Program-made: the position numbers and the translations under genes | Assembly (NCBI RefSeq): GCF_000006765.1 | Contig: NC_002516.2 | DNA: 64,000 nt | Reading direction: 5' to 3' (one strand) | Origin: Pseudomonas aeruginosa PAO1 | Lineage (GTDB): Bacteria; Pseudomonadota; Gammaproteobacteria; Pseudomonadales; Pseudomonadaceae | In this document: piece after piece, positions 21,923-43,345 of the stretch | Layout: each line of letters starts with the position of its first letter | Numbering within the stretch: the stretch's first letter is position 1 | Notes under the pieces: generated by a model | The model's database searches: none | What the model was told of the DNA's origin: nothing | Seen by the model: the letters and a program-made list of their open reading frames with translations, nothing else

Positions 21923-23620
<1,698 letters not shown>

Positions 23621-26073: not shown

Positions 26074-26143
26074 GGGAATATAAATCGCCGAATAAATGCA
26101 TTTTTTCGCTAAGAAGGGCCATTTAAAGAAAGGCCCCAGGCAG

Positions 26144-26186
26144 CGGCAAATGCATTTGGAGAATATTTTCCATGCTCTGGCTGCAT
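26144..26186. promoter_or_regulatory. Tandem LysR operator A (atsB/atsR divergent region)
   Basis: ATGC-N7-GAAT at 26150-64 plus a perfect ATGC-N7-GCAT at 26172-86. The first 32 nt are 26/32 identical to the reverse complement of 32835-32866. Confidence 0.75.
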
Positions 26187-26339
26187 ATGACGCGGAGAGG
26201 CCCGTGCGGCCTGTCATACTGCTTGTGGTTATAAAAAAATGAATTTTTATTATTTATTTTCGAGGCGCCGCTGTGCATAGCTAGCCGCACACCCGCTCCC
26301 GGCGGGAATCCCTCTCTTCCCGTTCCAAGGAGCCGCCCC

Positions 26340-27401
26340 ATGAAAGCGCTTACGTCTTCCCTGCTCGGTCTGTTCGCCGCGCCTGTGCTCGCCGGCCTGC
26401 TCGGTGCCTACGTGCCGCTGGCGAGCGCCGCTCCGCCGAAGGAAATCCGCATCGCGGTGCCGGACGTCAGCGCCGGCAGTTCGCACTCGGGCGGCGGCGT
26501 GGTCGACGTGCTCTACACCCGCCAGTTGCTGGAGAAGGAGTTCGCCAACGACGGCATCGCGGTGAAATGGAGCTTCTTCAAGGGCGCCGGCCCGGTGGTC
26601 AACGAAGCGTTCGCCAACGGCCAGGTGGACTTCGCCTACCTCGGCGACCTGGCGGCGATCATCGGCAAGTCCGGAGGCCTGGACAGCCGCCTGCTGGCCG
26701 CTACCGCGCGAGGGGTCAACCACTATCTCGGCGTGCAGCCGGGCTCCGGGATCAAGACCCTGGAGGATCTCAAGGGCAAGCGCGTAGGCATCTTCCGTGG
26801 CACCGCCAGCCAGTTGTCGTTCGACAATGCCCTGGCCAGCGTCGGTCTCAGCGAGAAGGACCTGAAGGTGATCAACCTCGATTTCAGCGCCGCCCTGTCC
26901 GCCCTCGCAGCCAGGCAGATCGATGCCACCTGGGGCCTGGCCGGACTGTTCGCCCTGCGCGACCGCGGGCTCGCGGAAATTCCGCTGAGCACCCGCGACC
27001 TGAACGGCGCCGGCACCCTGCAGGCGCTGCTGGTCGGCTCCGGAGCCTTCGTCGATGCCCATCCGGACATCACCGAGCGGCTGCTCAAGGTGCAGTTGCA
27101 GGCCCAGGACTGGCTGGCCCGCGAGGAGAACCGCGACGCCTACATCGAACTGGTGTCGAAGCAGGCCAGCTACCCGGTGGTGATCCTGCAGAGCGAGTAC
27201 CGTGGCCGCAAGCTGGGCGACGCCCTGTCGCCGCGCCTGGACGCCGATTTCCTTGGCCGGCTGGATGCTTCGATCCAGGCGGCCAAGCGTTTCGGCCTGA
27301 TCCGTCGCGAATTCAGCGCCGAGCAGTGGGCCGCGCCGGAACTGCTGGAGGCGGCCGGCAAGCTGGCGAAGGCCAAGGCCGTGGCGCAGGCGGCGGAGTG
27401 A
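26340..27401 (+). CDS. atsR: Sulfate-ester ABC transporter periplasmic binding protein AtsR
   Basis: 353 aa with a signal peptide and SsuA-like motifs (FFKGAGPVVNEAFANGQVDFAYLGD, GTASQL); divergent from atsB. Confidence 0.9.
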   Translation: MKALTSSLLGLFAAPVLAGLLGAYVPLASAAPPKEIRIAVPDVSAGSSHSGGGVVDVLYTRQLLEKEFANDGIAVKWSFFKGAGPVVNEAFANGQVDFAYLGDLAAIIGKSGGLDSRLLAATARGVNHYLGVQPGSGIKTLEDLKGKRVGIFRGTASQLSFDNALASVGLSEKDLKVINLDFSAALSALAARQIDATWGLAGLFALRDRGLAEIPLSTRDLNGAGTLQALLVGSGAFVDAHPDITERLLKVQLQAQDWLAREENRDAYIELVSKQASYPVVILQSEYRGRKLGDALSPRLDADFLGRLDASIQAAKRFGLIRREFSAEQWAAPELLEAAGKLAKAKAVAQAAE

Positions 27402-27818
27402 CGCCGAGCCGGGGACGGCCGAGGCGGCGCCGTTTCGTAGCAATTTGTAATATGTTTCGAGATTCTTGCACCGACCCAACCAATGACTGGATCGAGCGAA
27501 GTATCCAGCCGTTGGTCGGGGATTCTGCGTATATCGCGTCATGAAAGTTTCACGCGGGTAATCCGCAGGTTATTCCGCGATCATTTCGTTCGTTAATCGC
27601 CCCATATATTCAGATACAAAATCGGCACTGCCAATTCTTCCAGTTTTCCCTTCCGACAATTCTCCCGACCCTCCCCGGAAACAACTCCAAGTATCTCGCG
27701 GCGAACCGCCGCGTCCCGCATCTAGCCTGCCCATCACTACGACAGCGCGGCGCCAGCGCCGGGCCTCGCCCTGCGCGTCGGCGGCATTCCTGATTTTCTT
27801 CCGGAGGAGAGCGGTCAT

Positions 27819-28634
27819 ATGAATCTCGATAGCAAATTGTTCGACGCGACACTCGATCTCGAACGCGTGAAAGTTTCGGTGAGAACGCTGGTGAAGTTAT
27901 CCCGCCAGGAACAATCGGCGATCATCCGGACCCTCAACGAGTTTGGTTTCCTGCTGTTGCGCAGCGAACACGGCGAAGACAGGCAGGAACTTCTCGCGCT
28001 CAAGGAGTTGTTCGGCCGCGCCGCCCCCCACCCGCGCGCCGACGCCGACGGCATCGTGCCGATCAGCAATGCGCGGTATGTCAGCGGCTACCTCGGCTCC
28101 ACGCCGCTGGAGCACAAGCTGCACACCGACGGCGCTTTCCTCGACACCCCGGAGCAATTGTGCAGCCTGCAATGCGTGCGCAACGCCCGGGAGGGCGGGG
28201 AGACCCTGCTGGCCAGCGCCGGACTGGCCTTCGAGCGCCTGCGCCGGCGCATGCCGACCAAGCATCTCGGCCTGCTGCGCGGCGACGCCCTGACCATCGT
28301 GCGCAAGCACCAGAGCAGCACCCAGCCGGTGTTCCGCCTGAACGGCGAGGCGCTGGGCATCAAGTTCCGGCAGAACGACGGGGCGGCCGAGGTGGTCGAG
28401 CACCCTGTGGCGGTGGAGGCCTTCGCCGAACTGGTGGCGGCGCTCGAGGATCCGGCCTGCCAACTGCGGATCAAGCTCGAACCGGGGGAAATCCTGGTGC
28501 TCGACAACACCGCGGTGTTGCACGGGCGCACCGCCTTCTGCGCCAACGAACTGCGCGAAATGCGCCGGCTCAACTTCGACGGCCACGGCCGCCTGCGGGC
28601 GGAGCTGGAACTGGGCTTCAAGGTGGGGTTGTGA
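27819..28634 (+). CDS. TauD/TfdA (clavaminate-synthase-like) Fe(II)/2-oxoglutarate dioxygenase; PA0187-like
   Basis: 271 aa with HTD (LHTDGAF) and distal His (LDNTAVLHGRT). Confidence 0.8.
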   Translation: MNLDSKLFDATLDLERVKVSVRTLVKLSRQEQSAIIRTLNEFGFLLLRSEHGEDRQELLALKELFGRAAPHPRADADGIVPISNARYVSGYLGSTPLEHKLHTDGAFLDTPEQLCSLQCVRNAREGGETLLASAGLAFERLRRRMPTKHLGLLRGDALTIVRKHQSSTQPVFRLNGEALGIKFRQNDGAAEVVEHPVAVEAFAELVAALEDPACQLRIKLEPGEILVLDNTAVLHGRTAFCANELREMRRLNFDGHGRLRAELELGFKVGL

Positions 28635-29512
28635 TCGCACAGTTCGTCGCGGTGGTGCTGCCGATCCTGATCTGCACCGGGATCGGTTTCGCCTGGAGCC
28701 GTTCCGCCGGGCCGGTGGATACCCGCGCGCTGGTGTTCCTGGTGGCCAACGTCGGCTTTCCCTGCCTGCTGCTGTCGTCGCTGGACCGCCCCGGCCTGTC
28801 CATTGGCATGGTGGCCGGGGTGTTCCTCGCCACCGCGCTGGCGGTGCTGGCGTTCGCCCTGCTGGGCCTGGTCGCCCTGCGCCTGCTGCGGATGCCGGTG
28901 CGGCGCTACCTGCCGTCGATCATGCTGCCGAACTCCGGGAACATGGGCATCCCCATCGCCTACCTGGCCTTCGGCGAGGAGGCGCTGGTGTATGCGGTGG
29001 CGTTCTCCACCCTGATCCAGGTGGGTCACGCGACGCTCGGCGTCTGGTTCGCTTCGGGCGATATCACCCCGGCGAGCATCCTGCGCAACCCGATGATCTA
29101 TGCCCTGGCCGTGGCGCTGGGCCTGATCGCCCTGGGCTGGAGCCTGCCGCCGCCGTTGCGCGATGTGACCCGCCTGCTGGGTGGGATTACCGTGCCGCTG
29201 ATGCTGGTGATGCTCGGCCTGTCGCTGGCCGGTCTGCGCCTGCACGAGACCTGGCGGCCGTTGCTGCTGTCTCTGGTGCGGGTCTGGGGCGGTTTCGCGG
29301 TCGGCTATGGGATCGCTGCCGGCCTGGGCATGGCGGCGGTGGCGGCGGGCACCTTCGCCATCCAGTGCGGGATGCCGACCGCGGTGCTCACCTACCTGTT
29401 GGCCAAGCGTTACGACGGACCGGTGAACGAAGTGGCAGGCATGGTGCTGATCACCACGCTGCTGGTGCTGCTCTCCACGCCTTTGTTCATCCAGTTGCTG
29501 CCGCGCGCGTGA
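28631..29512 (+). CDS. AEC (auxin efflux carrier/Mem_trans) family transporter; PA0188-like
   Basis: 293 aa from GTG 28631 overlapping the upstream stop; about 10 TM segments with PNSGNMGIP and MPTAV motifs. Confidence 0.85.
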   Translation: MIAQFVAVVLPILICTGIGFAWSRSAGPVDTRALVFLVANVGFPCLLLSSLDRPGLSIGMVAGVFLATALAVLAFALLGLVALRLLRMPVRRYLPSIMLPNSGNMGIPIAYLAFGEEALVYAVAFSTLIQVGHATLGVWFASGDITPASILRNPMIYALAVALGLIALGWSLPPPLRDVTRLLGGITVPLMLVMLGLSLAGLRLHETWRPLLLSLVRVWGGFAVGYGIAAGLGMAAVAAGTFAIQCGMPTAVLTYLLAKRYDGPVNEVAGMVLITTLLVLLSTPLFIQLLPRA

Positions 29513-29520
29513 AGACGATC

Positions 29521-29544
29521 CGGGCCGCCCCGCGGGGCGGCCCG
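29521..29544. terminator. Perfect 24-bp GC palindrome between convergent genes; possible bidirectional terminator
   Basis: CGGGCCGCCCCGCGGGGCGGCCCG is its own reverse complement; no U-tract on either side. Confidence 0.45.
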
Positions 29545-29549
29545 AGGCG

Positions 29550-30908
29550 TCACCAGATCGAGCGGGAGTAATCGACGACCAGCCGGGTTTCGTCGATGTC
29601 GCCGTCGAGATAGCTCGCGTTGCCCCGGTGCCAGGCCTGCGAGGCGCGCAGCGCGAGGCCGGCGAGGGGGCCCGCCTTGACCCGATAGGCGAAGCCGAGG
29701 TCGTTTTCCCGGTGCCGCCCGTCACGCCCGTAGAGTCCGGCGTAGATGCTCTCGGCGGCACTGCTGGCGCTGGCCCCGGCACGGCCGCGGGCATGCAGCG
29801 CATGCAGGCTGAGCCCAGGCAGGCCGAGCGCGCCGAGGTCCAGGTCATAGCGTAATTGCCAGGAACGCTCGCCCGGTCCGTTGAAGTCGGAGTAGCCCAC
29901 CGAGTTGGCCAGTACCATGGACGCGCTGGAGCGCCCGTCGCCGAAGGCCATGTAGTCGAACGGCTGCTCGCCATGGACACGCTGGTAGGCCAGGGTGATG
30001 CGCTGCGGCCCATGTTCGTAGCCCAGGGCCAGGGAGCTGGTCAGGGTGTCGATGCGGCCGAAGCGGCTCTGGCCGCTGTCGCGGGTGCGGTAAGCGTCGA
30101 GGTCGACCCGCAGCGCGCGCTCCCCGCCCAGCGGCTGGCGATGGCTGGCGCCGAAATAGGCCTGCTGCCAGATGTCGTCGAAGCGCGAGGCGTAGAGCGA
30201 CAGTTGCAGCCGCTCCGTGGCCTGCCATTGACCGCCGAGGAAGCCGACCGCGTCGAGGCGCACCGGATAGGCGCCGAGGCGTCCGTAGACGGTGCTGATG
30301 TCGCCGCGGACCTTGGATTCGCCGGGGCCGGAGGCGGCGGTGAAGCGCCCGCCCTCGAGCAGCAGCCCGTCGAACGAGCGGTCCTCCAGCAGCAGGCCGT
30401 AGGCCATGCCGGCCAGCGTGCGGTTGCTGCTGGCGGCGAACACCGGCGCGCTGGTGGTGGTCTGGCCGTACTTCAGGCGGGTTTCGCCGTGGCGTAGCCT
30501 GAGGGCGCCACCGACCTTGCCGTAGCGATGGTCGGGATGGCCGTCGGCGCCGACCGGCAGGTTGCCGGTGCCGGTGCGGCCGCCGCCGCTGTCCAGTTGC
30601 AGGCCGAGCATGGCATGGGCGTCGAGGCCGAAGCCGAGGCTGCCCGGCGTGTAGCCGGAGGCGAACTGGAGGCGCAGGCCCTGGGTGGCTTCCTCGCGGT
30701 AGCCGTTGCGCTCGCTCCTGGGCTTGAAGCGGTTGCGCCCGGCGTTGTTCGGGCTGTCGCGGTAGTCGCGGTTGAAGTAGTAGGTGCGAGCGAGGAACTG
30801 CAGTTCGCTGTCCTCGACGAAGCCCCCATCCCCGGCCGTCGCGGCCGCCCCTTCGGAAAGCGTGCCGGCGACCAGGCCGGCGAATACAGCGCGTCTGAGA
30901 TTTTGCAT
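29550..30908 (-). CDS. opdI: OprD-family (Occ) porin, OpdI-like
   Basis: 452 aa with GFVEDSELQFLARTYYFNRD, FASGYTPG, GLDAHAMLG, SDFNGPGERSWQLRYD and C-terminal Trp. Confidence 0.85.
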   Translation of the reverse strand: MQNLRRAVFAGLVAGTLSEGAAATAGDGGFVEDSELQFLARTYYFNRDYRDSPNNAGRNRFKPRSERNGYREEATQGLRLQFASGYTPGSLGFGLDAHAMLGLQLDSGGGRTGTGNLPVGADGHPDHRYGKVGGALRLRHGETRLKYGQTTTSAPVFAASSNRTLAGMAYGLLLEDRSFDGLLLEGGRFTAASGPGESKVRGDISTVYGRLGAYPVRLDAVGFLGGQWQATERLQLSLYASRFDDIWQQAYFGASHRQPLGGERALRVDLDAYRTRDSGQSRFGRIDTLTSSLALGYEHGPQRITLAYQRVHGEQPFDYMAFGDGRSSASMVLANSVGYSDFNGPGERSWQLRYDLDLGALGLPGLSLHALHARGRAGASASSAAESIYAGLYGRDGRHRENDLGFAYRVKAGPLAGLALRASQAWHRGNASYLDGDIDETRLVVDYSRSIW

Positions 30909-31155
30909 TTATTGTTTTCTCCCACCTGAGTGCCAGGTGGGCGCAGTCTCGGAAGTCGCTCCGCAGGCCGCTTGTGTTTCCCTGCCTCGGCTTTTGCCGG
31001 GGCCTGCCATTGGCAGGGGCTGGCATGTGCAACGGCAGGCCGGGTCAAGCATTTCGGAAGTCACCGACGGAGAGTGTGGCGTCGGCCGTCATCCGCAACG
31101 GCCGTGGGTGGGAGCCTAGGCTCCCGATGCAACCTCGCCTAAGGGAATACGCTTC

Positions 31156-31881
31156 ATGAACAACAAGACCCTATGCCCTTCGCTCTTGCTCTGCCTTTCG
31201 CTGCTTGCACCGCTGTCTTGTCTCGGGGAGACCGCCGCCGCGCCCTATCCGCTGGCCCACCCACCGCGCCTGGCCGACTACCTCCCGCCGCCGCCGGCGG
31301 CGGACTCGGCTGCGGCCGTCGCCGATCTCGGCGCGGTGCTGGAGGCGCAACGCCTGCGCACGCCCGAACAGGTACGCCGGGTACGCGCCCACGACCAGTG
31401 GGAGGACAACGTCTTCCCCTTCGCCGGCGACCTGCTGGGCGCCTCGTTCGACAAGGAACGCCTGCCGCTGACCCGGAGTTTCTTCAACCGCGCCCAGGAA
31501 AACCTGGTCGAGGTGCTGATGCCGGCGAAGAAGCACTTCGCCCGCCCGCGTCCCTACGAAGTGACACCGAAGGTGAAGCCGGTGCTGCCGCCGCCGGAGG
31601 GGGAGTCCTATCCCAGCGGCCACACCATGGACAGCTACTTCAAGGCCTCGCTGCTGAGCATGCTGGTGCCGGAGCATCACGATGCGTTCTTCGCCCGCGC
31701 CGAGGAGCATGCGCAGAGCCGTGTGCTGGCCGGCGTGCACTTCCCCAGCGACCTGGAAGGCGGGCAGACCGCCGCCGCGGCGCTGGTGGCGAGCCTGCTG
31801 GCCGATCCGGCGGTGGCCGCCGACTTCGCCGCGGTGCGCGAGGAGCTGCGCGGCGCGCTGGGGTTGCCGAAACTCCAGTAG
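31156..31881 (+). CDS. Class A non-specific acid phosphatase (PAP2); PA0190-like
   Basis: 241 aa with a signal peptide and all three PAP2 motifs: KKHFARPRP, SYPSGH, SRVLAGVHFPSD. Confidence 0.92.
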   Translation: MNNKTLCPSLLLCLSLLAPLSCLGETAAAPYPLAHPPRLADYLPPPPAADSAAAVADLGAVLEAQRLRTPEQVRRVRAHDQWEDNVFPFAGDLLGASFDKERLPLTRSFFNRAQENLVEVLMPAKKHFARPRPYEVTPKVKPVLPPPEGESYPSGHTMDSYFKASLLSMLVPEHHDAFFARAEEHAQSRVLAGVHFPSDLEGGQTAAAALVASLLADPAVAADFAAVREELRGALGLPKLQ

Positions 31882-31904
31882 AGGAAGGGAAACCGCGCGG
31901 CGGC

Positions 31905-32822
31905 TCAGGCCGCCGCGTGTTGCGCCTGGTCCAGTTCCACCAGCGTCTCGATCATCGCCTTGGCCGCTGCCGAAAGCCGGTAGCCGCTGCGGCTGATGAT
32001 GCCGCAGCGGGCGCTGAGGCTATCCAGGTTCTGCGGCAGGTTGCGCCACTGTAGCGGTTGCAGTTCGCCGCGCTGCAGGTAGGGGCGCAGGGTCTCGTCG
32101 CTGGCGATGCCGATGGCGTCGGTCTGGCGGACGATACGGATCAGCGCGTGCATGTTCTCGCAGCGGATGTTGGCGGCGAAGTCGATCTTGCCGCTGAGGT
32201 TCGCCAGCAGCTTGCGGATGCCCGGGGGAATCAGGGTCGAGGCCAGCGGGTAGTTGAACAGGTCGTTGGTGGACAGGCTGTCCTTGCCCAGCAGCGGATG
32301 TTGCGGACGGCAGAAGAACTGGCCGCGGCGCGGGGTCAGCGGGCGCGTCTGGAAGTTCGGGTCGGCCTCGAAGTCGCGGATGTCGGCGACGAAGAATTCG
32401 ATCTCTTCGCGGAGCAGGGCGCGGCTGAGCTTTTCCCAGTTGTCCACGTCCAGGCTGATCTGCACCCGCGGGTGGCGGTTGATGAAGTCGGCCACCGCGT
32501 CCGGCACCAGTTGCTGGGCCGGCGCCGGCCCGCTGCCGAAGCGCAGCTCGCCGGCATCCAGCTTGTTCAACTGGGCGATCTCGTGGATCAGGTTGGCCGA
32601 CCCCTGCACCAGGCTCAGCGCGTGTTGCAGCACCACCTGGCCTTCCGGCGTCGGGCGCAGGTCCTTGCTGCCACGGTCCACCAACTGACAGCCAAGCTCC
32701 TGCTCCAGGCCCTGGATGCTGCGGCTGAAGGCCGGCTGGGTGATGCCCATGGCGTCCGCCGCGCGGACGAAACTGCGGTGTTCGGCGAGGGCGATGAAGT
32801 AACGCAGTTGGCGCAGATCCAT
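31905..32822 (-). CDS. sftR: LysR-family regulator, SftR-like by analogy to the P. putida sulfate-ester regulator
   Basis: 305 aa with HTH MDLRQLRYF...SFVRAADAMGITQPAFSRSIQGLE; divergent from the TonB receptor-atsK operon. The symbol is assigned by synteny. Confidence 0.75.
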   Translation of the reverse strand: MDLRQLRYFIALAEHRSFVRAADAMGITQPAFSRSIQGLEQELGCQLVDRGSKDLRPTPEGQVVLQHALSLVQGSANLIHEIAQLNKLDAGELRFGSGPAPAQQLVPDAVADFINRHPRVQISLDVDNWEKLSRALLREEIEFFVADIRDFEADPNFQTRPLTPRRGQFFCRPQHPLLGKDSLSTNDLFNYPLASTLIPPGIRKLLANLSGKIDFAANIRCENMHALIRIVRQTDAIGIASDETLRPYLQRGELQPLQWRNLPQNLDSLSARCGIISRSGYRLSAAAKAMIETLVELDQAQHAAA

Positions 32823-32823
32823 G

Positions 32824-32866
32824 ATGCTTTACCGGCATTGGAAATATTGGACAAAGGCATTTGCCG
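32824..32866. promoter_or_regulatory. Tandem LysR operator C (sftR/sftP divergent region)
   Basis: Perfect ATGC-TTTACCG-GCAT at 32824-38, one base from the LysR start codon, with a degenerate second dyad at 32846-60. Confidence 0.75.
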
Positions 32867-33171
32867 TTCGGGATGTGCTGGTTTTAAATGCAAGCTCTTA
32901 TTCCGTCAACAAAGAACAAATTAGAAAAATATGCAATTTAGTAATAAGCATAGATAGACCCCAGGAGCTGAACATGGTCCACCGTGCCTTTGCCGCCCCA
33001 CCTCCGCCGTTCCGAATGCCCTTCCGCGTCGCCGGCGGCTGTCGCCCCTGACAGTCGCCCGGGGCTGAGCCGTCCGCCGGCCCCCTTCGAACCTTTCGCC
33101 AGATCGCTGCCTTGCGCGGCATGGCCGCCTGCTGCCTGCGTCCGGCTGCGCCGGAACCGAGGACATTCACG

Positions 33172-35544
33172 ATGAAGCACCACTACCGCCTGCCGCTCCG
33201 CCGAACGCCGCCCGGCGGCTCCGACTACGCCCTGGCCCTGCTGCTCGCCCTCGGCGGTGCGTTGCCGGCCAGTGCCGCCGATGCTCCCGCGCCCGCCGAG
33301 GAAGCGCCGCCGCTGGCCGGCAGCGCACCGGCCAAGGCCGATACGGCCCTGGGCAAGGTCACTGTCACCGCGCGTCGCCGCGAGGAGGATTCGCAGAAGG
33401 TACCGACGCCGATCACCGTGCTCGGCGGCGAGACTCTCGAGGCCCAGCGCATCTCCCGGGTGCAGGACCTGCAGCAGGTGCTGCCCAGCGTCAATGTCGC
33501 CTACATCCATGCGCGGCAGTCGAGCGTCGCCGTGCGCGGCATCGGCAACAACCCCGCCAGCGACGGCCTGGAAGGCAGCGCCGGGATCTACCTCGACAAC
33601 GTCTACCTGGGACGTCCGGGAATGGCCGTGTTCGACCTGCTGGACATCGAGCAACTGGAGCTGCTGCGCGGTCCGCAGGGCACCCTGTTCGGCAAGAACA
33701 CCACCGCCGGGGTGCTGAACATCAGCACCCGCGCGCCGACCTTCACTGCCGAGCGTACCGTCGAGGTCTCCGGCGGGCAGGATGGCTACTTCCAGGGCCG
33801 CGGCACGGTTTCCGGGCCGCTCGGCGAAACCCTCGCCGGACGCCTCTCGGCCTATCGCACCCGCGACGACGGCTACATCAAGAACATCCACGACGACAAC
33901 TATCTCAACGGCGGCGAGCGCCAGGGCGCGCGCGGGCAATTGCTGTTCGAGCCGAACGAGGACTTCAGCCTGCGCTGGATCGCCGACTACAACGAGGAGG
34001 ATTCGAGCAACGGCAGCATGGTGGTCTACGGCGGCGCCGAGCGTTTCTGGCAGCGCGCCGCGCTGGTCGGCGCTTCGCCGTTGCGCGATCCGCAGCGCAG
34101 GAAGGTCAACATCAACGGCCGCCAGCACGTCAGCGTGCACCAGGGTGGCAGCTCGCTGGAGGCCAACTGGAACCTCGCCGGCGGTTACCGCCTGACCTCC
34201 ATCAGCGCCTACCGCTACTGGCACTTCACCCCGGCCAACGACGAGCAACTGAACGTCTCGGCGATCAACGACACCGGGGTGGAAGTGCACGACCGGCAGT
34301 TCTCCCAGGAGATCCGCCTGGCCTCGCCCACCGGCGGTGCCTTCGACTACGTGGTGGGCGCCTACGCGTTCAGGCAGAACCTCGGCAACAAGACCTTCAC
34401 CTCCTACGGACCGTTGGCCGACCTGTACCTGCTCGGCGCCAATCTCGGCGCGCTGAACGACACCTACTCGAAGGCCAACGGCAAGATCGAGACCGACAGC
34501 TTCGCGCTGTTCGCCCAGGGCACCTGGCACCTCACCGAACGCCTGGACTTCACCGCCGGCCTGCGTGGTACCTACGAGGAGAAGAACGCCAAGGTCGAGC
34601 GCTTCGCTCCGCTGGGCGGCGCGGCGGTCGGCGGGGTCGGCGCGGCGGTGCGCAACGGCCAGCTCGGCGCCTACGATTCCGGCGATCTCAGCCAGTACAA
34701 CTTCGCCCCTTCGGCGTTGCTCAGCCTCAGCTACCAGTTCAGCGACGACCTGCTCGGCTACGCCAGCCTGTCCCACGGCGAGAAGTCCGGCGGGGTCAAC
34801 CTGGCGGTGGGCAGCGCACCGAGCGCCGGCGCCGATTCGCTGCTGGTCGGACCGGAGCGCGCCAACGACGCCGAGCTGGGCCTGAAGAGCACGCTCTTCG
34901 ACCGGCGCCTGCTGCTCAACGCCAACCTGTTCTGGACCGGCATCCACGGCTACCAGGCCACCACCCTGTACCAGGCGCCGGGCTCGACCCAGTTGGTGCA
35001 GGTGCTGGCCAACGCCGGCAGCGTGCGCTCGCGTGGTCTGGAGTTCGAGGCCACCGCGCTGCCGTTGCGCGGCCTGACCCTGAACTTCAACGGCTCCTAT
35101 AACGACGTCACCTACCTGTCGTTCAAGGATGCCCCGTGCCCTGCGGAAGTCAGCACCCGGCCCGGCGCGCCGAGCAGTTGCGACCTCACCGGGCAGCGCG
35201 TGGTCGGCGCCTCGAAATGGATCGCCAATCTCAATGGCGAATACCAGTGGCGCCTCGACGACCGCTTCCAACCCTACGTCAGCGCCAGCTACGCCTACCG
35301 CTCCGCCGCCGAGGGCACGCTGGACAACTCCGACCTTTCGAAGATCGACGGCTACGCCCTGGTGAACCTCGCCGCCGGTCTGCGCAGCGATCTCGGCGAC
35401 GGCCAACTGGACACCTCGGTATGGCTGAAGAACGCCTTCGACAAGGACTACTACCTGAGCGCCTTCGCCAGCATCAACGGCTCCTACACCGCATCGGTGG
35501 GGCAGCCGCGCACGCTCGGCGTATCGCTGCGCTACGACTTCTGA
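33172..35544 (+). CDS. TonB-dependent receptor, SftP-like; PA0192-like
   Basis: 790 aa from ATG 33172: signal peptide, TonB-box region KVTVTARRR, plug motif [18 protein letters not shown] and C-terminal YDF. Confidence 0.92.
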
Positions 35545-35584
35545 GCCTTCACCCACGCAGTACCCCACGCATGAGGAACATGAC

Positions 35585-36487
35585 ATGAGCAATGCAGCAC
35601 AAGCCCTCGCCACGCCGGTACGGCTCGACATCCGGCCGGTCGCCGGACGGATCGGCGCGGAGATTCGCGGCGTGACCCTGTCCGGCGAACTGGACGCCGC
35701 CACCGTCGAGGCGATCCAGGCCGCCCTGGTACGCCACAAGGTGATCTTCTTCCGGGACCAGAGCCATCTCGACGACCAGACCCAGGAGGCCTTCGCCCAC
35801 TTGCTCGGCGAACCGGTTGCCCACCCCACCGTGCCGTCCCGCGAAGGCACCCGCTTCCTCCTCGAGCTGGATGGCGCCGAAGGCCGCCGGGCCAATTCCT
35901 GGCATACCGACGTGACCTTCGTCGAGGCCTACCCGAAGGCCTCGATCCTGCGCAGCGTGGTGGCCCCGGAGTCCGGCGGCGACACCGTCTGGGCCAACAC
36001 GGCGAGCGCCTACGCCGACCTGCCGGCGGAGCTGCGCGAGCTGGCCGACCGGCTCTGGGCGGTGCACAGCAACGAGTACGACTACGCCGGGGTCAAGCCC
36101 AGCGCCTCGGTGGAGCAGTTGGAGAACTACCGCAAGGTGTTCACCTCGACCGTCTACGAGACCGAGCACCCGGTGGTCCGCGTGCATCCGCAAAGCGGCG
36201 AGCGGACGCTGCTCCTCGGCCACTTCGTGAAACGCCTGAAGGGTCTTTCGCAGCATGACTCGGCGCACCTCTTCGCGGTGCTGCAGGGGCACGTCACGCG
36301 CCTGGAGAACACCGTGCGCTGGCGCTGGCAGGCCGGCGACGTGGCGATCTGGGACAACCGCGCGACCCAGCACTACGCGATCGACGACTACGGCGACCAG
36401 CCGCGCGTGGTGCGCCGGGTGACCCTCGGCGGCGACGTGCCGGTAGGCATCGACGGGCAACGCAGCCGGACGATCCGGAAGGCATGA
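35585..36487 (+). CDS. atsK: Alkylsulfatase AtsK (Fe/2OG dioxygenase)
   Basis: 300 aa with [16 protein letters not shown] and HPVVRVHP; closely resembles P. putida AtsK as recalled. Confidence 0.9.
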
Positions 36488-36495
36488 CGGACCCG

Positions 36496-36518
36496 GCCCT
36501 CTCCTCGCCGGGGAGGGC
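36496..36518. repeat. CCCTCTCC-family hairpin, copy 3
   Basis: GCCCTCTCC-TCGCC-GGGGAGGGC between atsK and the next dioxygenase gene. Confidence 0.5.
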
Positions 36519-36554
36519 GACCACAGGAAGAACGAACCCGCGAGGACCCCTTAC

Positions 36555-37454
36555 ATGAGCCAATCCGCCACCGCCCGGCAACCCGAACCCGAGGTCGCCG
36601 AGGCATTCCGCATCACCCCCCTGGAGGCGCCGCTGGGCGCCGAAGTCCGTGGCCTCGACGCGCGCCGGCCGCTGGCGCCGGAGCAGGTCCTGGCGCTCAA
36701 GCAGGCGCTGCGCGAGCACCACATCCTGGTGTTCCGCCAGCAGCACCTCGACGATGAGCAGTACTTGCGCTTCGCCACCCTGTTCGGCTCGGTGTTCCAG
36801 CCGCCGGCGGACATCCCGGTGCTGTCCTCGGGTGGCGACGGCAAGGTGCCGGACATCGTCAAGGTGGCCAACACCGGCGACGGCGAACTGGGCAACTTCG
36901 CCCTGCCGGCACACATCGACCACCAATGGACGCCGGTGCCGTCCTCCGGCTCGTTCCTCTACGCACTGGAGGTGCCGTCCAGTGGCGGCGAGACGCGCTT
37001 CACCAACCTGGCGCGCGCCTACGAGAGCCTCGACGAGGCGACCCGGCGCGAGATCGATGGCCTGCGCCTGATCAACTACAACCCCTTCATCCGCCTGCGC
37101 GAGGGCGGCTACGGCGGCGGTTTCGCCACCTACCGCACGCCGGACATCGAACCGATCCAGGGCAGCGAGCACCCGCTGGTACGCACCCACCCGGAAAGCG
37201 GCCGGCGCGTACTGTTCCTCAGCGCCCACACCGAGGTGGAGATTCCCGGCTACGACCCCGCGCGGGGCCAGGCGCTGATCGGTCGCCTGCGCGAACATCT
37301 GGCGCGCCCGGAACTGAGCTACAGCCACGCCTGGTCGGTGGGCGACATCGTCTGGTGGGACAACCAGGCCGTGCTGCATGCGCGCAACGCCTTCCCGGCC
37401 AGCGAGCGGCGGCGCCTGAAGCGCATCAGCCTGGCGGGCAGCCGTCCGTTCTGA
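36555..37454 (+). CDS. Second TauD-family dioxygenase of unknown substrate; PA0194-like
   Basis: 299 aa with HID (AHIDHQW), HPLVRTHPESGR and WDNQAVLHAR. Confidence 0.88.
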   Translation: MSQSATARQPEPEVAEAFRITPLEAPLGAEVRGLDARRPLAPEQVLALKQALREHHILVFRQQHLDDEQYLRFATLFGSVFQPPADIPVLSSGGDGKVPDIVKVANTGDGELGNFALPAHIDHQWTPVPSSGSFLYALEVPSSGGETRFTNLARAYESLDEATRREIDGLRLINYNPFIRLREGGYGGGFATYRTPDIEPIQGSEHPLVRTHPESGRRVLFLSAHTEVEIPGYDPARGQALIGRLREHLARPELSYSHAWSVGDIVWWDNQAVLHARNAFPASERRRLKRISLAGSRPF

Positions 37455-37552
37455 GCCGGCATCCCCCAGCGTGCGCCGGCTCCTCCGTTGCCGACCGGCG
37501 TAGGTCGCTGCGCGCCGCTCTGGCGAGCACCTTCCGTTCCGGCGAATAGCTA

Positions 37553-37583
37553 GCAGAACTGCGACATGCTGTCGCAGTTCTGC
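37553..37583. other. Perfect 14-bp inverted repeat (terminator or transcription-factor site)
   Basis: GCAGAACTGCGACA-TGC-TGTCGCAGTTCTGC. Confidence 0.85.
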
Positions 37584-37672
37584 CATTTCTCCGCGTCTAT
37601 CCTGCCCATAGGGCAATTCGCCTTTGGTCTAACGAGCTGGCCTGCAGCGCCCATGGAAAGGCGATCCTGACT

Positions 37673-37700
37673 TTGTAGTCAAAGTTTTACTTTGCTACTT
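37673..37700. promoter_or_regulatory. Candidate RccR (HexR-family) 28-bp site upstream of pntAA
   Basis: TTGTAGTC-N12-TGCTACTT versus the recalled consensus ATGTAGTG-N12-CACTACAT: 11/16 matches with exact spacing. Confidence 0.45.
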
Positions 37701-38100
37701 TGGCCAGGCATCAGGGATTGCTGATACAGCGTATTAAAAACATTAATTACCCCGGCATTCCGCGGCGCTGGCAGGATATTTTCCCGTCGAAGCCGTAGCG
37801 GCTTGACCTGATAGCCGGTCATTCACGGCAGGGATGTCATATTCTCGCGCGGGCTTCCCCGGATAGGCTGCACGCCAGTCAGGACGCGCCCGGCGGCGAT
37901 GGGCGGGAATTGTTGGTCGATTTATGACTTGTAGTTTCTCTGTCGTATGCCTTCAGAACTTGTTGAAGGCTTTTCGGCTCGATTGCACAATGCCGCGCCA
38001 AGGTTCGTTCGCGAATCGCGGTATGTGAGCTAGACCTCCGCAGCCGGTGCGCCATCCGCAGTGCCCCGGACTACTCGACAATCACGCAGGAGATTCGTGA

Positions 38101-39219
38101 GTGCAGATCGGTGTCCCCCTCGAGACCCATGCCGGTGAGACGCGGGTTTCCGCCACCCCGGAAACCGTCAAGAAGCTGATCGGCCAAGGCCACCAGGTGA
38201 TCGTCCAGAGCGGCGCCGGCGTCAGCGCCAGCCAGCCGGACAGTGCCTATGAAGCCGCCGGCGCGACGATCGGCAGCGCCGCCGAGGCCTTCGGCGCCGA
38301 CCTGGTGCTGAAGGTGGTCGCGCCCAGCGCCGCCGAGCTGGCCCAGATGAAAAGCGGCGCCGTGCTGGTCGGCATGCTCAACCCCTTCGACAACGAGAAC
38401 ATCGCCCGCATGGCCGAGCGCGGCATCACCGCCTTCGCCCTCGAGGCCGCGCCGCGTACCTCGCGGGCGCAGAGCCTGGACGTGCTCTCCTCGCAGGCCA
38501 ACATCGCCGGCTACAAGGCGGTGATGCTCGCCGCCAACCACTACCCGCGCTTCATGCCGATGCTGATGACCGCCGCCGGCACCGTGAAGGCCGCCCGCGT
38601 GCTGATCCTCGGCGCCGGCGTCGCCGGCCTGCAGGCGATCGCCACGGCCAAGCGCCTGGGCGCGGTGATCGAGGCTTCCGACGTGCGTCCGGCGGTGAAG
38701 GAGCAGATCGAGTCGCTCGGCGCCAAGTTCGTCGACGTGCCCTACGAGACCGACGAAGAGCGCGAGTGCGCCGAAGGCGTCGGCGGCTACGCGCGGCCGA
38801 TGCCGGCCTCGTGGATGGAGCGCCAGGCCAAGGCCGTGCACGAGCGCGCCAAGCAGTCGGACATCGTCATCACCACCGCGCTGATCCCCGGCCGCAAGGC
38901 GCCGACGCTGCTGCACGAGGCGACCGTGGCGGAGATGAAGCCGGGCTCGGTGGTCATCGACCTGGCCGCCGCCCAGGGCGGCAACTGCCCGCTGACCGAG
39001 GCCGACCAGGTCGTGGTCCGGCACGGCGTGACCATCGTCGGCCACAGCAACCTGGCCGCGCTGGTACCGGCGGACGCCTCGGCGCTATACGCGCGCAACA
39101 TCCTCGATTTCCTCAAGCTCACCCTGAACGCCGAAGGCTTCAGCGTGAACCTCGAGGACGACATCGTCGCCGCCTGCCTGATGTGCCGCGACGGCCAGGC
39201 GGTGCGCAAGAACGGCTGA
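38101..39219 (+). CDS. pntAA: NAD(P) transhydrogenase subunit alpha, part 1
   Basis: 372 aa from a GTG start with ETRVSATPETVKKL, GAGVAGLQAIATA and TTALIPGRKAP. Confidence 0.96.
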   Translation: MQIGVPLETHAGETRVSATPETVKKLIGQGHQVIVQSGAGVSASQPDSAYEAAGATIGSAAEAFGADLVLKVVAPSAAELAQMKSGAVLVGMLNPFDNENIARMAERGITAFALEAAPRTSRAQSLDVLSSQANIAGYKAVMLAANHYPRFMPMLMTAAGTVKAARVLILGAGVAGLQAIATAKRLGAVIEASDVRPAVKEQIESLGAKFVDVPYETDEERECAEGVGGYARPMPASWMERQAKAVHERAKQSDIVITTALIPGRKAPTLLHEATVAEMKPGSVVIDLAAAQGGNCPLTEADQVVVRHGVTIVGHSNLAALVPADASALYARNILDFLKLTLNAEGFSVNLEDDIVAACLMCRDGQAVRKNG

Positions 39220-39294
39220 GCCGCTGCGTCGGGAAGCTTCGATAACGATAAATGCGCACGCCTCGCGCCTGCGCCCTGAAGACCGGTGAAAACG

Positions 39295-39603
39295 ATGGAT
39301 ATCATTTCTGACGGGATCTACAACCTGATCATCTTCGTGCTGGCCGTGTACGTCGGCTACCACGTGGTATGGAACGTCACCCCTGCCTTGCACACCCCGC
39401 TGATGGCGGTGACCAACGCGATTTCCGCGATCGTCATCGTCGGCGCCATGCTCGCCGCCGCCCTGACCGTGACCCCGCTGGGCAAGGCCATGGGCACCCT
39501 CGCCGTGGCCCTGGCCGCGGTCAATGTGTTCGGTGGCTTCCTGGTCACCCGGCGCATGCTGGAAATGTTCAAGAAGAAAGCGCCGAAGGCGGGGGGCCAC
39601 TGA
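39295..39603 (+). CDS. pntAB: NAD(P) transhydrogenase subunit alpha, part 2
   Basis: About 102 aa (alternative GTG start at 39286) with [16 protein letters not shown] and [16 protein letters not shown]. Confidence 0.93.
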
Positions 39604-41039
39604 TGAGCATGAACCTGGTCACCCTCCTGTACCTCATCGCCTCGGTCTGCTTCATCCAGGCCCTGAAAGGCCTGTCGCACCCGACCACCTCGCGCCGCGG
39701 CAACCTCTTCGGCATGGTCGGCATGGCCATCGCCGTGGCCACCACCGTCGGCCTGGTGTTCAAGCTGGGCGCGGAGATCGCCACCACCGGCGTCGGCTAC
39801 ATCGTCGTCGGCCTGCTGGTCGGCGGTACCGCCGGCTCAATCATGGCCAAGCGCGTCGAGATGACCAAGATGCCCGAGCTGGTCGCCTTCATGCACAGCA
39901 TGATCGGCCTGGCCGCGGTGTTCATCGCCATCGCCGCGGTGGTCGAGCCGCAGTCGCTGGGGATCGTCGCGCACCTGGGCGACACCATTCCCACCGGCAA
40001 CCGCCTGGAGCTGTTCCTCGGCGCGGCCATCGGCGCCATCACCTTCTCCGGTTCGGTGATCGCCTTCGGCAAGCTCTCCGGCAAGTACAAGTTTCGCCTG
40101 TTCCAGGGCACCCCGGTGCAGTTCTCCGGGCAGCACCTGCTGAACCTGGTGCTCGGCCTGGCAACCCTCGGCCTGGGCCTGGTGTTCATGTTCACCGGCA
40201 ACCTCACCGCCTTCGCCGTGATGCTGGCGCTGGCCTTCGTCCTCGGCGTGCTGATCATCATCCCCATCGGCGGCGCCGACATGCCGGTGGTGGTGTCGAT
40301 GCTCAACTCCTATTCCGGCTGGGCCGCGGCGGGTATCGGCTTCTCGCTGAACAACTCGATGCTGATCATCGCCGGCTCGCTGGTCGGCTCCTCGGGCGCG
40401 ATCCTCTCCTACATCATGTGCAAGGCGATGAACCGCTCGTTCTTCAACGTCATCCTCGGCGGCTTCGGCGCCGAAGCCGACGCCGGCGGCCCGGCGGGCT
40501 CCAAGGAGCAGCGTCCGGTGAAGTCCGGTTCGGCCGACGATGCCTCGTTCCTGCTGACCAACGCCGACAGCGTGATCATCGTCCCCGGCTACGGCCTGGC
40601 GGTGGCCCGTGCCCAGCACGCGCTGATGGAACTGGCGGAGAAGCTGACCCATCGCGGGGTCACCGTGAAGTTCGCCATCCACCCGGTCGCCGGGCGCATG
40701 CCGGGGCACATGAACGTGCTGCTGGCCGAGGCCGAGGTGCCCTACGAGCAGGTGTTCGAGATGGAGGACATCAACTCCGAGTTCGGCCAGACCGACGTGG
40801 TCCTGGTGCTCGGTGCCAACGACGTGGTCAACCCGGCGGCGAAGAACGATCCGAAGTCGCCCATCGCCGGCATGCCGATCCTCGAGGCCTACAAGGCCAA
40901 GACCGTGATCGTCAACAAGCGCTCCATGGCCAGCGGCTACGCCGGCCTGGACAACGAGCTGTTCTACCTGGACAAGACCATGATGGTGTTCGGTGACGCC
41001 AAGAAAGTCATCGAAGACATGGTCAAGGCGGTGGAGTGA
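39603..41039 (+). CDS. pntB: NAD(P) transhydrogenase subunit beta
   Basis: 478 aa (TGATG overlap) with MPELVAFMHS, PGYGLAVA and HPVAGRMPGHMNVLLAEA. Confidence 0.96.
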   Translation: MSMNLVTLLYLIASVCFIQALKGLSHPTTSRRGNLFGMVGMAIAVATTVGLVFKLGAEIATTGVGYIVVGLLVGGTAGSIMAKRVEMTKMPELVAFMHSMIGLAAVFIAIAAVVEPQSLGIVAHLGDTIPTGNRLELFLGAAIGAITFSGSVIAFGKLSGKYKFRLFQGTPVQFSGQHLLNLVLGLATLGLGLVFMFTGNLTAFAVMLALAFVLGVLIIIPIGGADMPVVVSMLNSYSGWAAAGIGFSLNNSMLIIAGSLVGSSGAILSYIMCKAMNRSFFNVILGGFGAEADAGGPAGSKEQRPVKSGSADDASFLLTNADSVIIVPGYGLAVARAQHALMELAEKLTHRGVTVKFAIHPVAGRMPGHMNVLLAEAEVPYEQVFEMEDINSEFGQTDVVLVLGANDVVNPAAKNDPKSPIAGMPILEAYKAKTVIVNKRSMASGYAGLDNELFYLDKTMMVFGDAKKVIEDMVKAVE

Positions 41040-41059
41040 TTCCCCGCTGAGTCCACCAG

Positions 41060-41090
41060 AACCCCGGCCCAGGCCGGGGTTTTTCGTTTT
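41060..41090 (+). terminator. Rho-independent terminator of the pnt operon
   Basis: ACCCCGGC-CCAG-GCCGGGGT followed by TTTTCGTTTT. Confidence 0.85.
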
Positions 41091-41133
41091 CGCGGGTTGT
41101 CCGCACAGCGTTCTCCGCCGCTTCCAACGGCGA

Positions 41134-41176
41134 AAACACCAGCCTTTCAGGAATATTTTTCATGCCCGCAAGGCAT
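41134..41176. promoter_or_regulatory. Tandem LysR operator B (upstream of tonB2)
   Basis: GCCTTT-CAGG-AATATTT-TTC-ATGC-CCGCAAG-GCAT, with the same spacing as operators A and C. Confidence 0.65.
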
Positions 41177-41381
41177 GGGTTTTTCGTCGGATCGCTGTAG
41201 CCCGCCAACCACGCGGCCTGTGGCGATAGGGGCGAAACCCATAGCTCCAGAAGTTATTTCCATAACAAAAATAATTACTTCAGGCGCTAAGCCTCCTTGC
41301 CAATCATGCAACTCCCTGCGCCGCTAGGACTCCAGCACGGACCTGAGCGGCCATCGAGTTCGTCAGTGCAAGGAGCTTTTC

Positions 41382-42194
41382 ATGGCAACACCCCAGCCCG
41401 TCGATGCCCGCACGCAGCCCTGGCGCGAGACGCCCGGCGGCGACCTGGTGGCGCTCGGTCGGCCGGTTCGCCAGGCGTTGCACCTGGTTCGCCACAACCC
41501 GGCACAGGGTCGGGTGCTCAGCCGGCGCGAGACGATCCTGCTGGTCCTGTTCGCCCTGACCCTGCACGGAGCGGTGATCCATTGGCTGAGCCAGCAGAGA
41601 ACCCCGGCGCTGCCCGAGGTGCCGCCACAGGTGCCGCCGATGACCATCGAGTTCACCGCCCCGGCGCCGCCGGTGGTGGAACCGCCGCCGCCCGAGCCGT
41701 TGCCGCCGGTGGTCGAGGAACCGCCACCACCGGTGGTCGACGAGAACGCGGTGAAGCCGCCGCCGCCGAAGCCGGTGCCAAAGCCGAAACCCAAGCCCAA
41801 GCCGCAACCCCGGCCCAAGCCGGCGCCGAAGGCCGTCGAGCCGGCTCCGCCCGCGCCGCCGCAACCCGCCGCGCCACCCGCCCCGCCGGCGCCGGCCGCC
41901 GCCCCGGCGCCGCTGACGCCGCCGTCGGCGAACGCCGGCTACCTGCACAACCCGGCGCCGGAATACCCCGCCCTGGCCATGCGCCGCGGCTGGGAGGGCA
42001 CCGTGCTGTTGCGGGTGCATGTCCTCGCCAGCGGCAGCCCGAGCGAGATCCAGGTGCAGAAGTCGAGCGGACGCGAAGCCCTCGACCAGGCCGCGGTGAA
42101 AGCGGTCAAGCGCTGGTCCTTCGTTCCCGCCAAGCGCGGCGACAAGGCCGAGGACGGCTGGGTCAGCGTACCGATCGATTTCAAGTTGAACTGA
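41382..42194 (+). CDS. tonB2: Energy transducer TonB2
   Basis: 270 aa: single TM helix, Pro-rich EP/KP spacer, and C-terminal domain with YPALAMRRGWEG and SSGREALD. Confidence 0.93.
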   Translation: MATPQPVDARTQPWRETPGGDLVALGRPVRQALHLVRHNPAQGRVLSRRETILLVLFALTLHGAVIHWLSQQRTPALPEVPPQVPPMTIEFTAPAPPVVEPPPPEPLPPVVEEPPPPVVDENAVKPPPPKPVPKPKPKPKPQPRPKPAPKAVEPAPPAPPQPAAPPAPPAPAAAPAPLTPPSANAGYLHNPAPEYPALAMRRGWEGTVLLRVHVLASGSPSEIQVQKSSGREALDQAAVKAVKRWSFVPAKRGDKAEDGWVSVPIDFKLN

Positions 42195-42943: not shown

Positions 42944-43345
42944 ATGGCCTTCTCGACCCAGGACAGCGACGAAGTCCTTTCCGAAATCAACGTCACCCCG
43001 CTGGTCGACGTGATGCTGGTGCTGCTGGTGGTGTTCATCGTCACCGCGCCGCTGCTGACCAACTCGATCCCGATCAACCTGCCGAAGACCGAATCGGTGG
43101 CCCCGCCGGAGCAGAAGGATCCCCTGGTGGTGAGCATCGATGGCGCCGGCAAGCTGTTCGTCAACAAGGACGAGATCCAGCCGGAGCTGCTGGAGAGCAA
43201 CCTGGCCGCGGCCAAGGCGAAGGACGCCGAGGTCCGCGTGCAGTTGCAGGCCGACGAAGGGGTGAACTACGGCCAGGTGGCGAAGGCCATGGCTTCCATC
43301 GAGCGCGCCGGGATCACCAGGCTGGCGGTGATCACCGCACGCTGA
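42944..43345 (+). CDS. exbD1: ExbD
   Basis: 133 aa with EINVTPLVDVMLVLL motif. Confidence 0.93.
   Translation: MAFSTQDSDEVLSEINVTPLVDVMLVLLVVFIVTAPLLTNSIPINLPKTESVAPPEQKDPLVVSIDGAGKLFVNKDEIQPELLESNLAAAKAKDAEVRVQLQADEGVNYGQVAKAMASIERAGITRLAVITAR

Follow-up and report, generated by a model that had tools for sequence, protein, structure and literature searches.

A conserved two-box LysR-type operator at the ats, sftR and tonB2 genes most likely defines an SftR (PA0191) regulon in Pseudomonas aeruginosa

The sulfate-ester and tonB2 loci

We analyzed a stretch of 64,000 nucleotides of Pseudomonas aeruginosa PAO1 (contig NC_002516.2), called the window below, in which a composite 37-bp DNA element occurs three times: in the divergent gap between atsBCA and atsR (site A), directly before the LysR-type gene PA0191 (site B), and upstream of tonB2-exbB1-exbD1 (site C). 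The element recurs at orthologous positions throughout Pseudomonas, and its three copies are probably operators of one LysR-type transcriptional regulator (LTTR), most likely PA0191, the ortholog of SftR.

The window corresponds to PAO1 positions 186001-250000 and holds the genes from PA0183 to beyond PA0199. The published PAO1 coordinates of PA0191 (217905-218822; PMC8041468 supplement) equal those of the LysR open reading frame (ORF) in the window plus 186000, an operon table for PA14 (PMC3460626) agrees with the window gene by gene, and family searches agree with the gene names. The relevant genes and sites are as follows (window positions).

21923-23533 (atsA, arylsulfatase), 23621-24460 (atsC) and 24457-26073 (atsB), minus strand: sulfate-ester ATP-binding cassette (ABC) importer and sulfatase; coordinates match the PA14 operon table
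26150-26186, plus strand: site A, with box 1 (ATGC-N7-GAAT) at 26150-64, the spacer ATTTTCC, and box 2 (ATGC-N7-GCAT) at 26172-86
26340-27401, plus strand: atsR, periplasmic binding protein of the SsuA family, on the same side of site A as box 2, with its ATG 153 bp from that box
31905-32822, minus strand: PA0191, LysR-type regulator, sftR ortholog by identity and synteny
32824-32860, minus strand: site B, with box 2 at 32824-38, separated by one base from the ATG of PA0191 (32822), and box 1 at 32846-60
33169-35544 (PA0192, TonB-dependent receptor, sftP/optP), 35585-36487 (PA0193) and 36555-37454 (PA0194), plus strand: receptor and two dioxygenases of the TauD/AtsK family
41140-41176, plus strand: site C, with the degenerate box 1 (CAGC-N7-GAAT) at 41140-54 and box 2 (ATGCC-N5-GGCAT) at 41162-76, box 2 towards tonB2
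41382-42194 (tonB2), 42223-42942 (exbB1) and 42944-43345 (exbD1), plus strand

Site A sits in a gap of 266 bp between atsBCA (atsB ATG at 26073, minus strand) and atsR (26340, plus strand). Site B adjoins the PA0191 start and faces the receptor operon PA0192-PA0193-PA0194.

Anatomy of the composite operator

The pattern GCMTTT-N4-AATATTT-N3-ATGC-N7-GCAT matched the window exactly three times, at 26152-26186 (plus strand), 32824-32858 (minus strand) and 41142-41176 (plus strand), and all three sites are intergenic. The 35-base matches read GCATTTGGAGAATATTTTCCATGCTCTGGCTGCAT at site A (26152-86, plus), GCCTTTGTCCAATATTTCCAATGCCGGTAAAGCAT at site B (32824-58, minus) and GCCTTTCAGGAATATTTTTCATGCCCGCAAGGCAT at site C (41142-76, plus). 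No match was found in 100 dinucleotide-preserving shuffles of the window, and no fourth one appeared in the window when up to three mismatches were allowed. A position weight matrix (PWM) of 41 columns, compiled from other Pseudomonas species (88 unique sites), exceeded 8 bits in the window at sites A, B and C alone (54.4, 54.1 and 32.0, respectively); the best shuffle reached -8.4.

The operator is 37 bp long and consists of two T-N11-A boxes of 15 bp each, with centers 22 bp apart. Box 2 is a perfect ATGC-N7-GCAT at all three sites. Box 1, centered 22 bp upstream of it, is degenerate to a varying degree (ATGC-N7-GAAT or 7/8 at A, ATGC-N7-CAAT or 6/8 at B, CAGC-N7-GAAT or 5/8 at C), and ATTTTnn joins the two. 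All three sites thus show the inverted repeat with a T-N11-A core that is expected of an LTTR operator, together with a second, degenerate box about two helical turns away. Box 2 alone is not rare in the window (four matches compared with 1.4 expected, the fourth lying within a coding region at 28251), so that the significance comes from the composite.

A preliminary description of this DNA had anticipated much of this layout. Its motif, said to occur three times over 15 kb, has exact matches at A, B and C and none further in the window, and the perfect dyad with a degenerate dyad 22 bp away corresponds to box 2 and to a box 1 of 5/8 to 7/8. The proposed LysR layout of recognition and activation sites was likewise recovered, with two T-N11-A boxes 22 bp apart and one copy in the divergent promoter region of the LysR gene itself, beside its divergent target (site B, PA0191/PA0192). 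Of the 43-bp tandem unit in that description, the first eight bases, CGGCAAAT, are common to A and B only. Within them, CGGCAA forms a -35-like TTGCCG on the opposite strand and the remaining AT belongs to box 1. The reported 26 identities over 32 upstream bases of A and C had to be corrected to 21/32, or 26/43 over the full length; the closest pair is A and B (30/43), followed by B and C (27/43).

A chance repeat or mobile-element remnant was rejected in view of the unrelated flanks and the orthologous sites across species. The central AATATTT could serve as a -10 element of sftR at site B, but was treated as part of the operator, because A and C, which have no gene directly beside them, conserve it just as well.

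Conservation across Pseudomonas

A degenerate form of the pattern was scanned against genome contigs and matched in at least 120 contig tiles, at least 91 of them from Pseudomonas or Metapseudomonas; the counts by context given here refer to the matches listed. Another 29 of the tiles listed belonged to unrelated, mostly AT-rich organisms and appeared chance-like. Mapping of the window's protein panel placed the Pseudomonas sites in the atsR/atsB gap (45), at the start of the sftR ortholog (42), at the start of a paralogous LysR gene (32) and upstream of tonB2-exbB-exbD (13). Twelve further sites comprised eight in these same contexts that were cut by a tile end, one in a non-Pseudomonas tile (L027), and three without resolved neighbor genes (L033, 7829-63; L034, 241-75; L041, 7317-51). 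Among the matches listed for the 91 Pseudomonas tiles, no resolved site had cys, ssu, tau, msu or other sulfur genes nearby.

The same positions were recovered when loci were fetched by means of the LysR protein and not of the motif. In P. citronellolis, P. protegens and two putida-group genomes, the operator was found at orthologous positions with 0-4 mismatches, in all four immediately ahead of the LysR start and again between atsR and atsB, and in P. citronellolis also before tonB2, which there adjoins atsA. Among all loci fetched, 39/39 atsR-atsB intergenic regions had the orthologous site. A strong box lay 0-2 bp from the ATG in 48/51 sftR orthologs and abutted the start of the paralogous LysR gene in 34/34 cases.

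Upstream of tonB2, the motif was present in 23/23 regions (22 measured regions and L117), always in the same orientation and with an intact dyad. Its distance to exbB was 1029-1109 bp in the 22 measured regions and about 1.2 kb in L117, which contains an assembly gap. Ten of the 22 measured regions were outside the scan matches and had one to four mismatches, all of them outside box 2. Box 1 of site C is better preserved in other species (CATGCC...GAAT) than in P. aeruginosa. The AT located 5' of the GC gives box 1 its full ATGC half; although absent from the search pattern, it is nearly invariant at 1.9 bits.

The tonB2 operon often lies adjacent to a receptor gene of the sftP type or to sftR itself, and 15/23 loci had, upstream of tonB2 and on its strand, a gene for a PA0192-like receptor. 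This neighborhood supports a functional pairing of TonB2 with an SftP-type receptor. In three loci (L014, L049 and L119, the last at 1878-1912), the operator at the sftR start is decayed, with 8-10 mismatches, and the tonB2 site is intact; in these, sftR is not next to atsK/sftP. The last of them, from Pseudomonas sp. O230, has sftR moved beside tonB2, and the tonB2 site is alone in the shared region of 445 bp. In the other two, about 2.7 kb separate sftR from the tonB2 site, and its own operator is gone.

Many tiles of the fluorescens group carry the second LysR gene, whose product is about 52% identical to PA0191, beside a gene for a TonB-dependent receptor of 65% identity; examples are L002 (sites at 5923-5957 and 7041-7075), L006, L008, L010, L013 and L020. 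The operator variant found there is GCATTTCCCnGATATTTTTnATGTGAAAAATGCAT, the right half of which overlaps the start codon in 34/34 loci. The paralog locus of P. protegens also contains genes for an arylsulfotransferase and a second sulfatase. No copy of the paralog locus was present in the P. aeruginosa window of 64 kb. In P. putida GM4FR (L071, 3567-4425), a LysR-family gene divergent from tonB2 appears frameshifted: an intact N-terminus (MHIDLRQLRH...) is found in a frame other than that of the 242-aa ORF, and a -10 box of the paralog type lies 7 bp from the start, suggesting a rearrangement or a sequencing error.

Predicted promoters at sites A and B

A putative core promoter with identical elements flanks each of these two sites next to box 1.

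26121-26149, minus strand: predicted sigma-70 promoter of atsBCA, with -35 TTGCCG at 26149-44, a 17-bp spacer and -10 TTAAAT at 26126-21; predicted transcription start site (TSS) at about 26114
32861-32889, plus strand: predicted promoter of PA0192-PA0194, with -35 TTGCCG at 32861-66, a spacer of 17 bp and -10 TTAAAT at 32884-89; predicted TSS at about 32896

The atsB, sftR and paralog classes of sites all have, at constant spacing to the operator, a hexamer containing TTG, which is TTGCCG at A and B and abuts box 1. Past this hexamer come 17 bases, then TTAAAT (or TTATAA at the paralog sites) and a conserved CTTAT. The spacing of the predicted -35 and -10 boxes to the operator is constant, whereas the distance to the start codon ranges from 78 to more than 300 bp. 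Elements that are fixed relative to the operator and not to the start codon fit a core promoter. With respect to the predicted promoters, the center of box 1 would lie near -43 and that of box 2 near -65, which suggests classical activation by an LTTR at both sites, of atsBCA from A and of PA0192-PA0194 from B. Box 2 of site B lies between any PA0191 promoter and the start codon, so that autorepression is expected.

Some features of the surroundings were noted in passing. If the predicted promoter is correct, PA0192 would have a leader of about 270 nt (32896-33168), with a short ORF of 25 codons from 32974. An Rfam search found no RNA family in the window, including this leader and that of tonB2. 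Short GC-rich inverted repeats follow box 2 at site A (26198-26212, AGGCC-N5-GGCCT) and at site C (about 41201-41219), and GCCC...GGGC dyads of varying sequence are also found at the tonB2 site of other species. Between atsR and the gene of an OprD-family porin lie PA0187 (TauD family) and PA0188 (membrane transporter), at 27819-29512. PA14 does not have these two genes, its PA0186 being followed directly by PA0189, and they appear to be a strain-variable insert within the cluster.

Site C and the tonB2 operon

Site C lies between the end of pntB and tonB2, with two further features in its vicinity.

41058-41083, plus strand: intrinsic terminator of pntB
41252-41313, plus strand: core promoter region of tonB2, with an AT-rich block at 41252-92, a -10-like AATCAT at 41302-07 and a TSS at about 41313, transferred from PA14

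Since the terminator ends the pntB unit upstream, site C belongs to a separate transcription unit. The TSS was taken from rich-medium data for the PA14 tonB2-exbB-exbD operon, where it lies 69 nt before the ATG. Conservation upstream of tonB2 comprises a -10-like (A/G)AT(C/G)AT just 5' of the TSS, the AT-rich block from -61 to -21 (41252-92), which is highly conserved, and site C. On the box 1 side of site C, neither promoter-like conservation nor, in P. aeruginosa, a gene was found. The atsR side of site A resembles this layout, with operator, short GC-rich dyad, conserved AT-rich block and gene in the same order. At tonB2 and atsR, the regulator may act as a distal partner of CysB, or at a starvation-specific promoter that is still unmapped.

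The 5' untranslated region of tonB2 (41313-41381) contains a hairpin at about 41320-41353, and L014, L049, L062 and L084 have a hairpin of different sequence in the same place. In the P. fluorescens subgroup, a U-run comes after the hairpin and immediately precedes the ribosome-binding site, an arrangement that resembles a leader attenuator. RNAalifold gave no consensus structure for a MAFFT alignment of the tonB2 leader, in which the hairpins are not in register.

AT-rich blocks beside the operators

Each operator is accompanied by a conserved AT-rich block (26225-26270, 32905-32955 and 41252-41292); at tonB2 in other species it reads TCTATCCATAACTTTAAAGATTACTTTAAGAGATAAGC. A PWM for CysB derived from systematic ligand evolution by exponential enrichment (SELEX) had its best matches in the window at 26228-43, 32941-56 and 41253-68, all within these blocks and off the 37-bp element, although any AT-rich PWM will favor AT-rich blocks in a genome of 68% GC. 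The CysB SELEX consensus, TTATA-N4-TATAA, is unrelated to ATGC-N7-GCAT. The blocks probably carry a CysB input.

Which protein binds the operator?

The operator is tied to genes of the sftR family: among the resolved matches listed, it abuts the starts of orthologs and paralogs and is otherwise found at ats, sft and tonB2 genes. A strong box 0-2 bp from the ATG of sftR or its paralog is a signature of LTTR autoregulation. PA0191 orthologs, 70-79% identical throughout Pseudomonas, occupy the ats-sft cluster in the syntenic order atsK/sftP-sftR-atsR-atsBCA among the genomes compared. From the sequences, positions, neighborhood and conservation of the sites we infer that PA0191 binds them, that A and B have promoters, whether regulation is positive or negative, and what CysB contributes. 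We consider it likely that the three sites are operators of one LTTR, and PA0191 is the most likely candidate. The comparative data support the earlier proposal that the LysR protein encoded at 31905-32822 joins the outer membrane receptor, the TonB motor, the ABC importer and the sulfatases in one regulon, since the ats, sftR and tonB2 positions are all conserved. The ats genes form an iModulon distinct from the CysB-1/2 iModulons (PMC9023270).

Several observations weigh against this assignment. High-throughput SELEX (HT-SELEX) with full-length PA0191 gave AACTA-N6-TAGTT (PMC8041468 supplement), a T-N8-A motif unlike the T-N11-A of the family and without resemblance to the 37-bp operator. 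The best match to this motif in the window has 13.6 of 29.2 bits and lies away from sites A-C, and 806 kb of orthologous loci contained three weak matches and no good one. It is mainly because of this conflict that we put the assignment to PA0191 no higher than likely. A curated transcriptional regulatory network entry citing PMID 10715018 lists the ats genes as requiring CysB, so that some conserved sequence in their vicinity could serve this protein. At site C, the box centers lie at about -144 and -166 from the transferred TSS, which is not an activating geometry, the orientation is opposite to the canonical activating arrangement, and box 1 is weak in P. aeruginosa (5/8). The predicted promoters at A and B were missed by a strict sigma-70 consensus scan covering all three regions, because their -10 element has a T at position 2, and the rich-medium TSS data for PA14 contain no mapped start for the atsBCA or PA0192-94 operons. 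Finally, the genome-wide consensus scan that the preliminary description had suggested returned, among the matches listed, resolved Pseudomonas sites in the ats, sftR, paralog and tonB2 contexts only, but no P. aeruginosa genome is among them, and further P. aeruginosa sites are possible.

The sites might be bound by CysB instead, in which case the motif would mark membership in the sulfate-starvation (cys) regulon. The CysB dependence listed for the ats genes, the induction of tonB2 by sulfate starvation, the generic T-N11-A form of the element and the location of the top CysB PWM matches in the same three intergenic regions would all agree with this. However, those matches fall in the adjacent AT-rich blocks and follow an unrelated consensus, cys, ssu, tau and msu genes are without a resolved site among the matches listed, and a strong box abutting the starts of sftR and its paralog is expected of self-regulation and not of CysB. 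We regard binding of the element by CysB as unlikely. It is also conceivable that PA0191 binds the HT-SELEX motif and acts elsewhere, for example at pel, and that the 37-bp element is the operator of another regulator; a pel promoter is among the predicted targets of the motif, and a PA0191 mutant has a biofilm phenotype (PMC8041468). Against this, neither the promoter region of PA0191 itself nor the orthologous loci of about 90 species contain the motif, which would be unusual for an LTTR, whereas the 37-bp element travels with the sftR-family genes. Nor does the supplement of the HT-SELEX atlas list a transcription factor with an ATGC-N7-GCAT consensus, the nearest being PA2267 (TTGCA-N5-GCATA), which has a different spacing; among the sites listed in the atlas, none is predicted at the PAO1 coordinates of A-C. 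Another owner of the operator appears quite unlikely.

A more limited objection would accept sites A and B as functional, but take site C for a second terminator hairpin of pntB, or for a fortuitous or relic copy that has no effect on tonB2. Its degenerate box 1 and its distance to the mapped TSS, which lies about 140 bp or more downstream, would be compatible with this, and in P. aeruginosa, box 2 together with the TTTTT that follows it scores as terminator-like. Yet the T-run is unconserved, many species having an A-run there, a strong pntB terminator already exists at 41058-83, and the upstream gene varies. We rejected site C as an intrinsic terminator on these grounds. The occurrence of the site in all 23 tonB2 upstream regions, behind any upstream gene and with orientation and distance kept, and the better box 1 of other species leave a nonfunctional site C very improbable.

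Comparison with known systems

Classical divergent LTTR operators combine a recognition site (RBS, T-N11-A, near -65) with activation sites (ABS, -45 to -35); the sites of BenM, CatM and CbnR read ATAC-N7-GTAT. The element described here has the same two 15-bp T-N11-A boxes, with the perfect one by the regulator gene and the weak one over the predicted -35 of the divergent target, and the same predicted positions of -65 and -43 at A and B, so that autorepression and activation would be expected. It differs in its ATGC/GCAT half-sites, in the location of the strong box right on the translation start region of the regulator, and in a third copy (C) that lies far upstream of its presumed target and is inverted relative to it.

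An ats-sft cluster has been described (PMC3596284). P. putida is known to have SftR and an ats-sft cluster that includes the receptor SftP. In strain S-313, SftR is reportedly needed for the use of sulfate esters, according to work of Kahnert et al. from 2002. Gene family, the synteny atsACBR-sftR-atsK-sftP and the TonB-dependent receptor SftP agree between S-313 and P. aeruginosa, but the accounts of the S-313 cluster that we consulted do not name tonB2-exbB-exbD. The literature that we searched, to which the study of Kahnert et al. does not belong, contained neither a description of the 37-bp operator nor an assignment of tonB2 to SftR.

The link between tonB2 and sulfur is already known, through induction by sulfate starvation, and the regulatory principle is standard. 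In the part of PMC3377617 that cites Tralau 2007, PA0197-99 are strongly induced by sulfate starvation and not reported to be iron-regulated. As in the sulfate-starvation stimulon and CysB regulon, the ats genes, PA0192-94 and PA0197-99 respond to sulfur limitation, and CysB-like AT-rich sites flank A-C. In contrast to that regulon, the element is limited, among the matches listed, to sulfate-ester, tonB2 and sftR-family genes and does not extend to the wider cys/ssu/tau set, which points to a local regulator acting on top of CysB.

Dedicated TonB-ExbB-ExbD paralogs that are tied to particular receptor sets are found elsewhere, for example in the Vibrio TonB2 systems. The P. aeruginosa case is alike in that a second TonB system is co-located, and would be co-regulated, with a specific non-siderophore receptor. 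It differs in that the specificity of TonB2 for PA0192 is only putative and that P. aeruginosa TonB2 is mostly discussed in connection with iron; recent papers treat it mainly as a coupler of iron uptake.

Proposed mechanism and implications

We propose that each operator consists of a high-affinity recognition box (ATGC-N7-GCAT) and a weaker box of the activation type (ATGC-N7-GAAT), two helical turns apart and linked by an A/T tract (ATTTT), which would give a footprint such as an LTTR tetramer is expected to leave. The weak box of A and B would overlap the -35 of a TTGCCG-17-TTAAAT promoter, allowing classical activation of atsBCA and PA0192-PA0193-PA0194, respectively. A single base separates the strong box of B from the start of PA0191, and occupancy would also repress PA0191. 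At C, the regulator would contribute distal co-activation, probably together with CysB, or drive an unmapped starvation-specific promoter. The result would be a compact regulon in which the receptor, the TonB2-ExbB1-ExbD1 energizer, the ABC importer and the sulfatases and dioxygenases are switched together.

Taken as a whole, the comparative evidence points to a real and conserved cis-regulatory element of a well-known type that most likely defines an SftR/PA0191 regulon including tonB2-exbB1-exbD1. The case is evenly balanced for the more specific proposition that TonB2-ExbB1-ExbD1 is an energizer of organosulfate import, switched on together with PA0192/SftP by PA0191 via the conserved distal operator, and that the "AtsR iModulon" is the SftR regulon. 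This iModulon owes its name to the periplasmic binding protein AtsR (PA0186), which a curated P. aeruginosa regulatory network (PMC9023270) lists as the transcription factor of the ats genes. This entry is a mislabel, which the finding would correct. If our reading is correct, the uncharacterized P. aeruginosa LysR protein PA0191 would gain a defined operator and a small, coherent regulon. The finding makes the roles of TonB2 and PA0191 directly testable. As an energizer of organosulfate import, TonB2 would be part of sulfur nutrition, any role in iron uptake aside. Organosulfate scavenging matters for the survival of pseudomonads in soil and rhizosphere, and it may matter for growth on sulfated compounds of the host.

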